Positions 1 to 31,334 of a stretch of 64,000 bases of DNA are shown in pieces. This DNA comes from Magallana gigas (taxonomy: Eukaryota). The position numbers and the translations under genes are program-made. The DNA lies in the NCBI RefSeq assembly GCF_963853765.1, contig NC_088854.1, positions 22,506,001 to 22,570,000 on the forward strand, read 5' to 3'. The stretch's first letter is position 1. Each line of letters opens with the position of its first letter. A model generated the notes under the pieces. The model was not told the origin of the DNA. It was given only the letters and a program-made list of their open reading frames with translations, and did no database searches.

Positions 1-823
1 GTGGAACAACGACACTACGATTTCCTCGAGCTACACCAATCCTTACAAATTTGTCCCAGGCCAGACTTATAGGTCTGCGTGCCTGGTAAGCAATTGCTTT
101 TGAGGGATTTTCAAGTGTAAACTGAGTTGGTGAAATAATAGATGAAAAATGCCTTGATTCGTCTCTTTTTGCAGGTTGTAAGCGGAACCTCGGCGACTTT
201 GTTTCCTAAGATTTGTTCCGATTCCACGCAGACTCCGACGTCTGTGAGCTCTCCTGGCCTGAAGCTGACTTTCTCCGGTGCTTCTTCTTCATGTAGTAAG
301 TAAACCATTCACTAGTTGCAGAACTGCAGCTCTACGGTCTTCCAGAAGTTACTCGTAGAGCTACAGTTCTGCATCAAAATATGCATCTATTGAGCTACAT
401 TCCCACCAATTTTGATTTAGCAATCCAATACCAATGCTATGGAATTGGTAGTGAGGGATTATATTTTTTACTTGAGGAAGTTTGGTATCTTTATTTCAAT
501 ACATTTTTAAAAACGCTTCTTTCTGATTTGCAGGTATAACGACAGAGCCCGAATCTGATCTTGTGTATTACATCATTATAATTCTGGGTGCCTTGTTCAT
601 TATCTCGCTTGTGATTCTACTGATAATCTTGTACAAAAAAGGTGTTTTCCGAAAGTGTAAACGGAGGTGCTGCAAATCTACTAAAGTTGGTCCACTGGAA
701 ATTATCATGTCCAAACCGCCTTTAAAAGTACAACCGTTGTATTTGGATGAACCCCTAAGACGAGACAAAACTGACGTCATCAGTGTGTTGGAATTCAACA
801 CGAACTTTAATTTTAAATTATAA
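1..823 (+). CDS. Gene A (5'-partial): Cys-rich type-I transmembrane protein, paralog of B/C/D
   Basis: Exons <1-85 (WNNDTTISSSYTNPYKFVPGQTYRSACL), 175-295 (VVSGTSATLFPKICSDSTQTPTSVSSPGLKLTFSGASSSC) and 534-823 (TM YYIIIILGALFIISLVILLIILY, then KKG and tail). All junctions are GT-AG and in phase. The 121-nt exon matches gene B 12944-13064 in length and sequence. Confidence 0.85.
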
Positions 824-3561
824 ACAGTGATTTCAATTTATATGGGGCCTAAGTGCGGTAAAATAAACAAGTTTGGTAGGAACAGATCAGACTGTTGTGT
901 CTTTGTGCCCAGTGAACAATTTTGCAATAATGTGTGCGTGGTTGGAATTATTGGATTACGTAATAATGTCCTGTGTGTCGGACAAGGAACTCTTTTACAT
1001 TAATTCAGTTTATTAGTGGGAATTTTAAAAAAAACTTTTGTCAGACCATGGTGCTTCCTTTACAGGATCAGAATGTATCACAGTGTGAAATACTGAACAC
1101 AATAGCAACACGGAAAACACTAATACAGTATTATGGAAACGTGTTGTTGCATCCAGTGAATAATTTTAAAGTGTGGTGTTTGATTTGCAATATTATTAAG
1201 CTCAGTTTGATACTTGCTATATCTTCTTGTTAAAGTTTTAAATATATATACAATATTAAAGTTCATTTATTTGTATAATTCAAAACTTATTACGTTATAA
1301 AATCAATGTGTACCATACCTCCTTAACCTGCAAGTACAAAAACAGTAGTACACAAAATGGTACAAACATGCATTAGTTTCAAATTATTATGAGGATAATT
1401 TCCCAAATTTGAAAGGGTTAATAGTAGTTTACGGCCCTAAATCTTCTTCTTTAAAGTTACAATCAAAGCGTCCTTAACAACAAAGTCGTCTGATTCGTAA
1501 GTAAATTGAGCTGTATTGTTTTGGACCTCAAAAGGATTGAATGGAATCAATAATACCTAAAGCAATGAAAGATGTTACGCATATTGACCAGAGGAGCTGT
1601 TGAGAATGACTGCTTTTGCATGTGATGGACTTAACAAGTGGTGGGACGACCATCCCTACATGCGCTCTACAGCTAAGAAAATAATACCAGTACCTCCGTG
1701 ACTCCAACGTTTTAAAAGAATGAGATTGAGTGTTAAGTTGGTATTGTACATCTTGGCCAGTTTTCATTCTTACATGTTAATAAATGGTACAATACAAAAT
1801 ATTACACGTAAGAATAGGATGGCGATAATGTGTTCTTTCCCATGTGGATACGTGTAATAATTTATTTTCTAATTGTGCAATGCATTTAAAAAAAATTAAG
1901 AGAGCGTGGAACGACTTCAAATCACAATAAGCTCGGCCATTGTTCCTCTGTTGACAACCATATTGTACATAATAATTAACATCAATATCTTATATTCAAA
2001 GCTTTAAAACTTGCTGAACCAAGTCACCTTCACTCTTTCATTGCCCGCGGATTTATCATCCCATCTCCCCCTCTTTGTGTCTATACACATTTGTTCAAGA
2101 CTTTCCTTAGTGCGATCGGATCGCAAATAGCAGTTAATTCTGGAGATTAAATACTGCTTATTCATTGCACAAAATGATGACGACGACTTGAAATATTCAA
2201 GTATGATATATCCGCTCGTTTTTTTATATCATTTCTTTTAAATGGCTTTGTATTGAAATCGATTTTTCTTTCCCAGAGGTATTGTCCATTTAACAAAACG
2301 AACAATCTAATGAAATGCGAAGTGCATTTTCTTTCATCTTTTGTAGAGAATCTAACAGACCTTTAAAATGACTACATACCAATTCATTTTAATATTCCGG
2401 GTACTCTCGAGTTATCAACATGTAATACGTTTTAATTTTGTTGACGTATAAACATAAGACAAAAAATCATTAATTTTGTCTTGTTACAATACAAGTCCAT
2501 TTATTTTAAAAGTAGTGTACCAAAAACACAGTAAAACTCCGAGGAAGTGTTTAAATATGCAGATTTATTACAATGATTCACGTATAACAAAATTAAATTT
2601 TACTGTAGATCGCCATTGCTGTACATGTAAATAGTGATCGCCTGTGCTTACTAAGCTAAATTTTTATGATAATTTGCATTCTATTGATGACCTTTATTAC
2701 TTTCTAAAAAATGAATTGCACGAGTTCGATATCTAAAGAAAATTTATCAAGTAGGTGAGATGGACGCTTAGTGTAAAATAGCCGTATGTGATATTCATCT
2801 ATATCTCATTTCTACCGAGGTTTTTATTCAGAACGTTTTGAAACAAAAGAAGTTACTCAAACACCTGTTTGCAAGTGTCACATCTTCATTAATGTCGCCA
2901 TAATGCACTGTTTACTTGGTGGCAAGTTCTCAAATTGACATAACACCACCAAAAAAGCTTTCGAGTAATGACATACACACTTTTACTTTCAAAAAAATCG
3001 AACCTTTTATTTTAGTTTCTAAATCATCACGAATATCTGTCTCCATTACAAACAATGATGTAATTCGAAAATTTTGCAAAACGATTTGTAGAGATTTAAA
3101 CTCGTCGGCCCCCGATCGTTTCCACGGCATAGACGACCAGCTACGAGCCATTGGAATGGCAAAGTTATATTACTGCAATTTTTTTTTTTTAAATCGATGC
3201 ATAATTTAAACCCGTCAGCTGAAAAGAAGCCCGAACCCATGCATTATCCGTGGATTAACCCATTGTTAGTTTCGGCCAGGTTCACATATGTATTTTTTCT
3301 ATTTGTGTATTAATAACAACAGATTATAGATCAATAAGGGTTGTGACACACACGGACGTATTTGTTTCAATGTTCACATGGATTTGGAGGTTATAAGCTG
3401 TATTTAACTGTATCTGGACCTGAAAAAACAAAACCATTAATTTTTCATTCGGGATTGAGAAATACGTAAAAACAATGACTTGAAAAACTAGTGAATATCT
3501 AGATTTTATTGTGTTTTTTTTTCAGTTTGTCGATTTTTCTTCTTTTAACTATGAGAAACGC

Positions 3562-30400: not shown

Positions 30401-31334
30401 AAACTCATCCTAAGTCCAAAAAGAGAGTATGAATAAGCCGTACCTACATGTATATGTGAAGATAATTATACAAATCTACATTGTGCGATGAACTAATAAT
30501 ATCGTAGCATCGGTATAACAAAAATACACACGAGAAGTTTACAAAAATACGATTAGGAAATGCATGTACACCTTAGAGCATATTGGATACGACGTCAAAG
30601 TTTTAAACGTCCATTTAAATGTACATTATACTCGTTCTCAAATCATTTTTCACCATATTTGGTGTGCATTTGCGTCTGATTTAAAAAAAATGGTTGATAT
30701 TGTTCTAAACTATTCGAATGTTTAATTTTCTGTCCATTTTAAACGTCCATTTAAATGTACATTATACTCGTTCTCAAATCATTTTTCACCATATTTGGAG
30801 TGCATTTGCGTTTGATTTAAAAAAAAAATGGTTGATATTGTTCTTAACTATTCGAATGTTTAATTTTCTGTCGATGTTACATTGTACTTTTATTATACGT
30901 CAATTTTAGCCATACCACCATCCTTCGGTGTTTCAAAAACCCTTGATATTACAAACAACAAAAATTTTACCCCAAAAACATTTAAAAAGAACGCAAATTG
31001 TAGTAAAAAATGGTACAATAATCATTTTTTTCCAATGAAATTTTGTTAAGGTTGAGGTCAGATTTTCCTAATTTCTAAGTTCACAAAGAAATTAATAAAA
31101 AAAAAACCCGTGTTTTAATTTAACATAAATATGAATTAATTTATTATATTTTACGCGAATCTTTTAAATATTTTTTAAAGTAAACATTAGAATGCCTACA
31201 AAAATTATTCTTACGCGGCGTTACAGATTTTAAATTAAATTAATATATAAAGAAACTATTTTACCTGAATATGGAATACCTAATCCCAAAATTAGCAATC
31301 GAATTAACGAGCATTTAATGAAAAGAAAATTCAT
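27473..31334 (-). CDS. Gene D: 12-Cys type-I TM protein, about 479 aa; possible 316-aa secreted isoform
   Basis: Exons 31334-31265 (MNFLFIKCSLIRLLILGLGIPYS), 30347-30155 (CTFPTYLMGEW), 29798-29695 (104 nt as in B), 29451-29329, 28974-28789, 28639-28527 (YLSVWNND), 28308-28185, 28088-28065 (microexon DTCQIILP) and 27975-27473 (TM YLFILLGLFIIFLVVVIVML). The first exon is the least certain. Confidence 0.85.
30601..30872 (+). repeat. Tandem duplication, 2 x about 136 bp
   Basis: Unit TTTTAAACGTCCATTTAAATGTACATTATACTCG... starts at 30601 and again at 30737 with few differences; lies in intron 1 of gene D. Confidence 0.9.

Follow-up and report, generated by a model that had tools for sequence, protein, structure and literature searches.

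A four-gene cluster in the oyster Magallana gigas encodes predicted single-pass membrane proteins assignable to the uncharacterised DUF7043/7044-DUF7042 family

APCDD1, an inhibitor of Wnt, is a single-span protein whose structure (PDB 8e0r/8e0p) comprises two barrels with a lipid pocket and 12 cysteines engaged in disulfide bonds (PMC10193966). Molluscs possess clusters of genes for type I single-pass proteins of unknown fold, among them the Biomphalaria PTC1/GRC and PTC2 clusters, which are tied to parasite resistance and are hyperdiverse, in that genes may be present or absent and allelic proteins diverge by up to 85% (PMC7494358, PMC13712769). Here we analyse four genes of the oyster Magallana gigas, A and B on the plus strand and C and D on the minus strand of C2:22506001-22570000 (64,000 nucleotides, hereafter the window), which recall both systems in outline. 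Like APCDD1, their products are predicted to be single-span type I proteins with two beta-barrels and 12 conserved cysteines, a resemblance of architecture only; like the snail genes, they form a molluscan cluster, a likeness at the level of description. Unlike the Biomphalaria clusters, the window genes have conserved orthologues and appear to be under purifying selection.

A third comparison is offered by proteins of scallop, mussel, Lottia and C. gigas that combine the Pfam domains DUF7043/DUF7044 and DUF7042, families that are themselves without known function. These proteins share with the window genes their domain order and predicted two-barrel structure (template modelling (TM) score 0.85), and many relatives are likewise single-pass membrane proteins with long tails. 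The window genes are set apart from the Pfam families by scores below the cut-off, and constitute a mollusc subfamily with one module, 12 cysteines and tail motifs of its own.

The evidence presented below identifies a genuine and conserved cluster, and provides no evidence for a fast-evolving immune family. Taken as a whole, it makes it probable, in our judgement, that A-D are type I glycoproteins encoded by old paralogues, with a two-barrel, ligand-binding ectodomain and a conserved signalling tail, maintained by purifying selection.

Gene models and family assignment

RefSeq lists B, C and D as LOC105321884, LOC105321885 and LOC105321891, all labelled ‘uncharacterized protein’, and a literature search on these identifiers and on DUF7042-44 found no paper, in keeping with a first-pass annotation of the sequence, which had recognised four receptors without a known function. 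The splicing of B was read from RNA contigs (4 runs, 4 studies), whose joints are canonical (GT..AG) and, together with a first exon located through a loose contig end, give eight exons and a protein of 453 amino acids (aa), and that of A, C and D from transcript contigs in public assemblies; A, C and D were first modelled by homology to B under equal intron phases, and then corrected against RefSeq and transcript proteins. Block alignment of the spliced contigs L010 (A), L008 (C) and L012 (D), each of 1.5-1.7 kb, reproduces every modelled junction, and the D model equals RefSeq XP_019920269.3 (P0188) residue for residue. One third of the sampled sequence words of the B stretch occur in 18 RNA or probable RNA runs from about 10 studies, and 72-83% in probable DNA runs (kind unrecorded) under two species labels. 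A, B, C and D are genuine, expressed genes: they lie where they were originally placed, the pieces described being contained in open frames of both strands, and transcripts support all four spliced models.

Intron phases 1,2,1,1,1,0,1 are common to the four genes, as had been proposed, except that C lacks the intron between exons 3 and 4, which are fused, while C and D possess an extra 24-nt microexon bearing the twelfth cysteine (DTCQ...). Two gene limits differ from those first given, as A begins at C2:22503132, 2.9 kb upstream of the window, and D begins in RefSeq at 31349, not at 31334.

Each product combines a signal peptide with 12 cysteines that align across the four ectodomains; a short linker leads to a single transmembrane helix, and this to a cytoplasmic tail. 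These are the features of a predicted type I single-pass membrane protein. The ectodomains, of ∼290 residues, carry four cysteines in the first predicted barrel and eight in the second (including its last strands), together with 2-6 N-glycosylation sequons. Alignment bears out the invariant 12-cysteine skeleton, now in A as well as in B, C and D, and the motifs described earlier are all present: the C-x-(F/L)-P-x4-G-x-W start (including CxFPxxxxGxW), W(N/T)(N/E)(D/N) (WNND/WTEN) and KV(Q/E)PLY.

No characterised family had been assigned to these proteins; their function is indeed uncharacterised, but the family can be named. Pfam scans of single exons gave weak hints only, and full-length sequences were needed; queries for Pfam and structure searches were database orthologues 94-100% identical to the window proteins, plus relatives. 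Among these, hidden Markov model matches are weak and consistently placed, with DUF7043/DUF7044 at residues ∼20-115 and DUF7042 at ∼160-280. Against a Pfam gathering score of 27 bits for all three families, DUF7042 (PF23069) scored 21.4-23.5 bits in the B orthologue and 23.9 in that of D, both below the cut-off, with no match for A or C at E<=0.1, while two relatives reached 26.1 bits (P0010) and 32.2 bits (P0013, over the cut-off); DUF7043 and DUF7044 (PF23070, PF23071) scored 15-21.6 bits, again below the cut-off, in the orthologues of A, B, C and D. At E<=0.01, DUF7042 matches 43 of the 56 aligned family members, DUF7043 35 and DUF7044 20 (best E-value 9.7e-13). Precomputed PF23069 annotations are listed for the C. 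virginica, Saccostrea and Ostrea orthologues, and a bona fide, intronless DUF7043+DUF7042 gene in the same genome has the identical domain order; when the family profile was compared by hhalign with a bona fide DUF7043 copy of the oyster, the E-value was 0.0012 and the probability 19.5%. A profile of exon 2 retrieved 137 representative proteins, some of which stand for clusters and share 87-95% identity with A, B, C and D. A-D are assignable to the uncharacterised DUF7043/7044-DUF7042 family, as additional members, so that the first-pass annotation had pointed to the correct domains in proposing DUF7042/7043/7044 for testing.

Orthology, selection and family size

Orthologues of B were found in C. 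virginica (78% identity), Saccostrea echinata (74%) and Ostrea edulis (71%), those of D in O. edulis (76%) and S. echinata (75%), and those of C in C. virginica (70%) and two Saccostrea species (60%), the overall range for B, C and D across oyster genera being 60-79%; for A, a Saccostrea orthologue could be placed in the tree. In a maximum-likelihood tree every window gene falls, with its orthologues, into a fully supported clade of its own; A and B are sisters that separated among the oysters, later than the branching of the ark clam lineage, and C and D lie on long, separate stems. The tree points to old paralogues, and not to the recent tandem copies implied by the original description. In S. 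echinata the C and B orthologues bear consecutive gene identifiers on one contig, which suggests, but does not prove, that the two genes are adjacent there.

Pairwise Nei-Gojobori comparison of transcript coding sequences with the window yielded ratios of non-synonymous to synonymous change (dN/dS) of 0.23 for A (synonymous divergence, dS, 0.28), 0.2 for C, and 0.09 and 0.23 for the two barrels of D, with most regions at 0.09-0.29, values that point to purifying selection on these three genes; A-D as a group are probably maintained by such selection as one-to-one orthologues in oysters. When B is compared with its orthologues by region, identity is 94% and 87% in the proximal cytoplasmic tail, 87-88% in barrel 1 and 76-81% in barrel 2, which makes the proximal tail the best conserved part of the protein. 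Orthology, low dN/dS and a conserved tail are together what marks conserved, non-redundant genes whose products have an intracellular partner, and not a recognition family undergoing rapid diversification.

The family as a whole is nevertheless expanded, the four window genes being an old, stable part of it. A genome-wide paralogue count with the family profile yielded no fewer than 36 exon-5-type segments, almost all of them on chromosome C2, in about 10 places. Dense arrays of DUF7042-type exons occupy C2:44025000-44079000 (∼18 exon-5-type matches) and C2:45208000-45283000 (∼7), both far larger than the cluster in the window.

Such an expansion, with its large tandem array at C2:44.02-44.08 Mb, is what would be expected had A-D been immune pattern-recognition receptors of a diversifying, lineage-expanded family, like the single-pass transmembrane clusters associated with schistosome resistance in Biomphalaria, and the first-pass annotation had read the cluster in this way. 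The paralogues are very different outside the cysteine scaffold, as it had noted (their tails, however, are not wholly divergent, and have short motifs in common); relatives in other phyla join the module to MAM, SRCR, lectin or Ig domains; the snail clusters tied to parasite resistance provide a precedent; and in D the reference and a transcript differ as would a mosaic of old haplotypes, with dS ∼0.10 in the ectodomain exons and 0 in the tail. We consider this explanation improbable, and the immune-receptor inference unsupported, in view of the one-to-one orthologues across oyster genera, the low dN/dS, the conservation of the B tail and the absence of any paper on these genes from the literature searched. 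Moreover, the snail clusters are described as lacking known domains and homologues outside gastropods, so that no link between them and the oyster genes is shown. Where hyperdiverse clusters exhibit allelic divergence, presence/absence variation and excess non-synonymous change, the window genes have low dN/dS and one-to-one orthologues, and most of the sampled words of B recur in the DNA runs.

Predicted ectodomain, conserved tail and proposed role

AlphaFold2, supplied with the B-orthologue ectodomain and a 56-sequence alignment, returned a model with a mean predicted local distance difference test score (pLDDT) of 91.5 and a predicted TM score of 0.87, containing eight strands within residues 12-133 and a further eight within residues 152-283. 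The ectodomain is thus predicted to consist of two 8-stranded, antiparallel, calycin/lipocalin-like beta-barrels, the first corresponding to DUF7043/7044 and the second to DUF7042. Among AlphaFold DB clusters, the best matches (TM 0.65-0.85) are annotated as ‘DUF7042 domain-containing’ and come from scallop, mussel, apple snail and oyster; six of the proteins at ranks 1-9 carry this annotation (E-values 2e-27 to 1.6e-16, TM by query). Weaker two-domain matches come from rotifers, flatworms, nematodes, springtails, a midge, an annelid and a brachiopod, some of them with the additional MAM, SRCR, lectin or Ig annotations mentioned above. The window proteins differ from lipocalin/calycin barrels in being tandem, membrane-anchored and disulfide-rich, and no lipocalin Pfam match was found in the family proteins scanned. 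Two-lobed barrel proteins such as TbpB, found by Foldseek against PDB and Swiss-Prot models, had a TM of only ∼0.2 and were not relied upon.

The architecture shared with APCDD1, along with a weak lipocalin-like similarity common to both, raises the question of whether A-D are distant APCDD1 homologues, that is, surface lipid-binding proteins that capture lipid-modified ligands such as Wnt. We judge this very unlikely. PF14921 (APCDDC) matched none of 10 full-length members at E<=0.1 and none of 56 members at E<=0.01; hhalign comparison with the exons of the oyster's own APCDD1, a separate and true APCDD1 gene, gave probabilities of 0.4% and 1.7%; the family profile found no PDB sequence at E<=10; and in structural comparison many unrelated barrels outscore APCDD1, of which a single domain aligns. 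By analogy, APCDD1 may offer the best guide to the working of a protein of this kind, but it would not be the family to which these proteins belong.

Three motifs of the tail are also found in relatives from scallops and ark clams: K-V/I-E/Q-P/L-L-Y, KRPxxIGPIVEP and (S/T)-(I/V)-x-S...F, the last lying in an acidic stretch rich in Ser. Their retention across oysters, scallops and ark clams, with the proximal tail the most conserved region of B, argues for an intracellular partner, and leaves little room for the idea, suggested by the compact, disulfide-rich, glycosylation-prone ectodomain and the short tail of C, that these are adhesion or structural surface glycoproteins in which the barrels act as a rigid spacer without signalling.

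A ligand-binding surface receptor with a conserved intracellular partner is the most likely role of these proteins. The two-barrel ectodomain would bind an extracellular ligand, either in a barrel cavity, as in lipocalins and APCDD1, or through the variable stretch encoded by exon 4. The conserved tail would then relay binding to a fixed intracellular partner, recruited through the conserved tyrosine or the acidic, Ser-rich motif, by Tyr/Ser phosphorylation or by endocytic sorting. Splicing could tune both ends of the receptor, through the exon 4 copies and two tails of B, and through forms of D that lack the signal peptide or are soluble.

Several observations weigh against this receptor model. 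The window genes score 15-24 bits where the Pfam gathering score is 27, and the tail motifs fit no motif class that can be named with confidence. In one region, barrel 2 of C, dN/dS is 0.75, a sole exception that derives from just seven changes, and pairwise dN/dS is in any case compatible with positive selection at a small number of sites.

A bolder version, which we regard as rather unlikely, would make DUF7043/7044-DUF7042 proteins an unrecognised protostome class of tandem-calycin receptors, expanded in molluscs, that bind small hydrophobic or lipid-modified ligands in the barrel cavity in parallel to APCDD1 and signal through K-V-E-P-L-Y, with the exon 4 copies tuning specificity. The receptor model nonetheless supplies a structural reading and testable motifs for a family known in databases only as ‘uncharacterized’ or DUF, which oysters carry in dozens of copies and which has relatives across many phyla of protostomes. 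Should the barrels bind ligands and the tail motif recruit a partner, these proteins would represent a new type of receptor in an animal of commercial and ecological importance.

Splice forms, alleles and other elements of the window

The coordinates of the coding exons are collected in Table 1. The two copies of B exon 4 are both multiples of three in length, and correspond to the part of barrel 1 that is least conserved. The copy at 11231-11359 appears in RNA contigs from three runs, whereas RefSeq isoform X2 and Logan transcripts use that at 10722-10847; exon 4 is skipped in Saccostrea and Ostrea isoforms of the B orthologue. The window model with alternative exon 4' differs from the X2 protein (P0005) at 5 of 549 residues. 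Splicing from the donor after 13735 to the exon at 15353 exchanges the end of the B tail for another version of the Ser-rich motif and a long Lys/Glu-rich extension.

For D, a transcript corresponding to RefSeq isoform X2 (31424-31635) splices 31424 to 30347, skipping the signal-peptide exon. RefSeq isoform X4 ends in ...DTCQIILPSTHD just past the microexon, and would therefore be a soluble ectodomain.

Table 1. Coding exons of genes A-D. Positions are those of the window.
Feature	Position	Strand	Evidence
A exon 6, 3' part	1..85	+	Homology model with B phases; L010; exons 1-6 upstream at C2:22503132-22506085
A exon 7, end of barrel 2, Cys11 and Cys12	175..295	+	Homology model; transcript L010
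A last coding exon, transmembrane helix; tail of 62 aa containing KVQPLY and DVISVLEFNTNF	534..823	+	Homology; transcript
B exon 1, start codon and signal peptide	3586..3646	+	RNA-contig loose end at 8765 matches 3614-3643
B exon 2, CTFPTEIDGDW opening barrel 1	8768..8939	+	RNA joint 8937/9->10413/5, 4 runs
B exon 3, barrel 1, Cys3	10415..10518	+	RNA joints
B exon 4', 126 nt, alternative to exon 4 and paralogous to it	10722..10847	+	Isoform X2 (P0005); Logan transcripts P0138/P0139
B exon 4, 129 nt, Cys4, most variable barrel 1 stretch	11231..11359	+	RNA joints 10518->11231, 11358/9->12251/2
B 52-nt alternative exon, frameshift leading to premature stop	11865..11916	+	RNA joints 10518->11865, 11914/6->12250/2; translation
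B exon 5, start of barrel 2, Cys5-8	12252..12440	+	RNA joints
B exon 6, WNND motif, Cys9-10	12601..12740	+	RNA joints
B exon 7, Cys11-12	12944..13064	+	RNA joints
B exon 8, transmembrane helix; tail containing KRPLRIGPIVEP and KVEPLY; the 453-aa form stops here; internal donor after 13735	13379..13824	+	RNA
B alternative last coding exon, 549-aa form, starts EADTISVESAEDEDNPF	15353..15732	+	X2 contig loose end at 13735 matches 15353, one mismatch; P0005
C last coding exon, transmembrane helix and short tail	23534..23781	-	Transcript L008
C 24-nt microexon, DTCQPTTQ, Cys12	24003..24026	-	Database proteins; transcript
C exons 24378-24270, 24689-24574, 25155-24970, 25509-25286 (last is fused 3+4)	24270..25509	-	Homology; transcript
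C exon 2, CQLPEDLRGVW	25731..25908	-	Homology; transcript
C exon 1, coding part, signal peptide; 5' untranslated exon at 26490-26639	26134..26173	-	Database proteins; transcript
D last coding exon, transmembrane helix; tail of 133 aa containing IQIVPLF and STISILSTDDDDVSF	27473..27975	-	Model; RefSeq; transcript
D 24-nt microexon, DTCQIILP, Cys12; second donor 4 nt downstream	28065..28088	-	Database proteins; transcript
D exons 28308-28185, 28639-28527, 28974-28789, 29451-29329, 29798-29695	28185..29798	-	Model equals P0188 exactly; transcript L012
D exon 2, CTFPTYLMGEW	30155..30347	-	Model; RefSeq
D exon 1, signal peptide; alternative upstream donor at 31424 bypasses exon 1	31265..31349	-	RefSeq; transcript

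Two sets of transcripts diverge from the reference. Transcripts L010 and L011 are colinear with A and encode a protein that differs by 13% (87% identity, dS 0.28), with a 5' untranslated region and first exon that are 96% identical; they represent either a sister species or a very old haplotype. Within D (27473-30347), reference and L012 have DNA identities of 92-95% in exons 2, 3 and 5 and the ectodomain divergence given above, with zero synonymous differences in 164 transmembrane and tail codons and 99.7% identity in the last exon with its 3' untranslated region. This pattern is that of an apparent mosaic allele of old haplotypes.

Intron 2 of B contains, at 9818-10315, a repeat of ∼500 bp with a summed RNA contig depth of up to ∼1180 and many differing loose ends on both sides, probably a dispersed, transcribed repeat. 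Between B and C lies a long terminal repeat (LTR) retrotransposon (17598-22660), whose direct repeats begin at 17598 and 22055 and have 100% identity for 300 nt or more, suggesting a recent insertion; its 1047-aa minus-strand open reading frame (18842-21985) has aspartyl protease, reverse transcriptase and RNase H matches, and no integrase match. Adjoining this element, a plus-strand frame at 22676-23017 starts SDSDSDLPFRFSF, has a Lys/Arg-rich end and resembles the alternative tail exon of B at 15353; it has no Pfam match, and may be a leftover or a further terminal exon. Repeated frames similar to the MIEAP (mitochondria-eating protein) domain at 33876-34771, 37469-37792, 45572-45928 and 63439-63963 suggest that the right half of the window contains another family of tandem genes.

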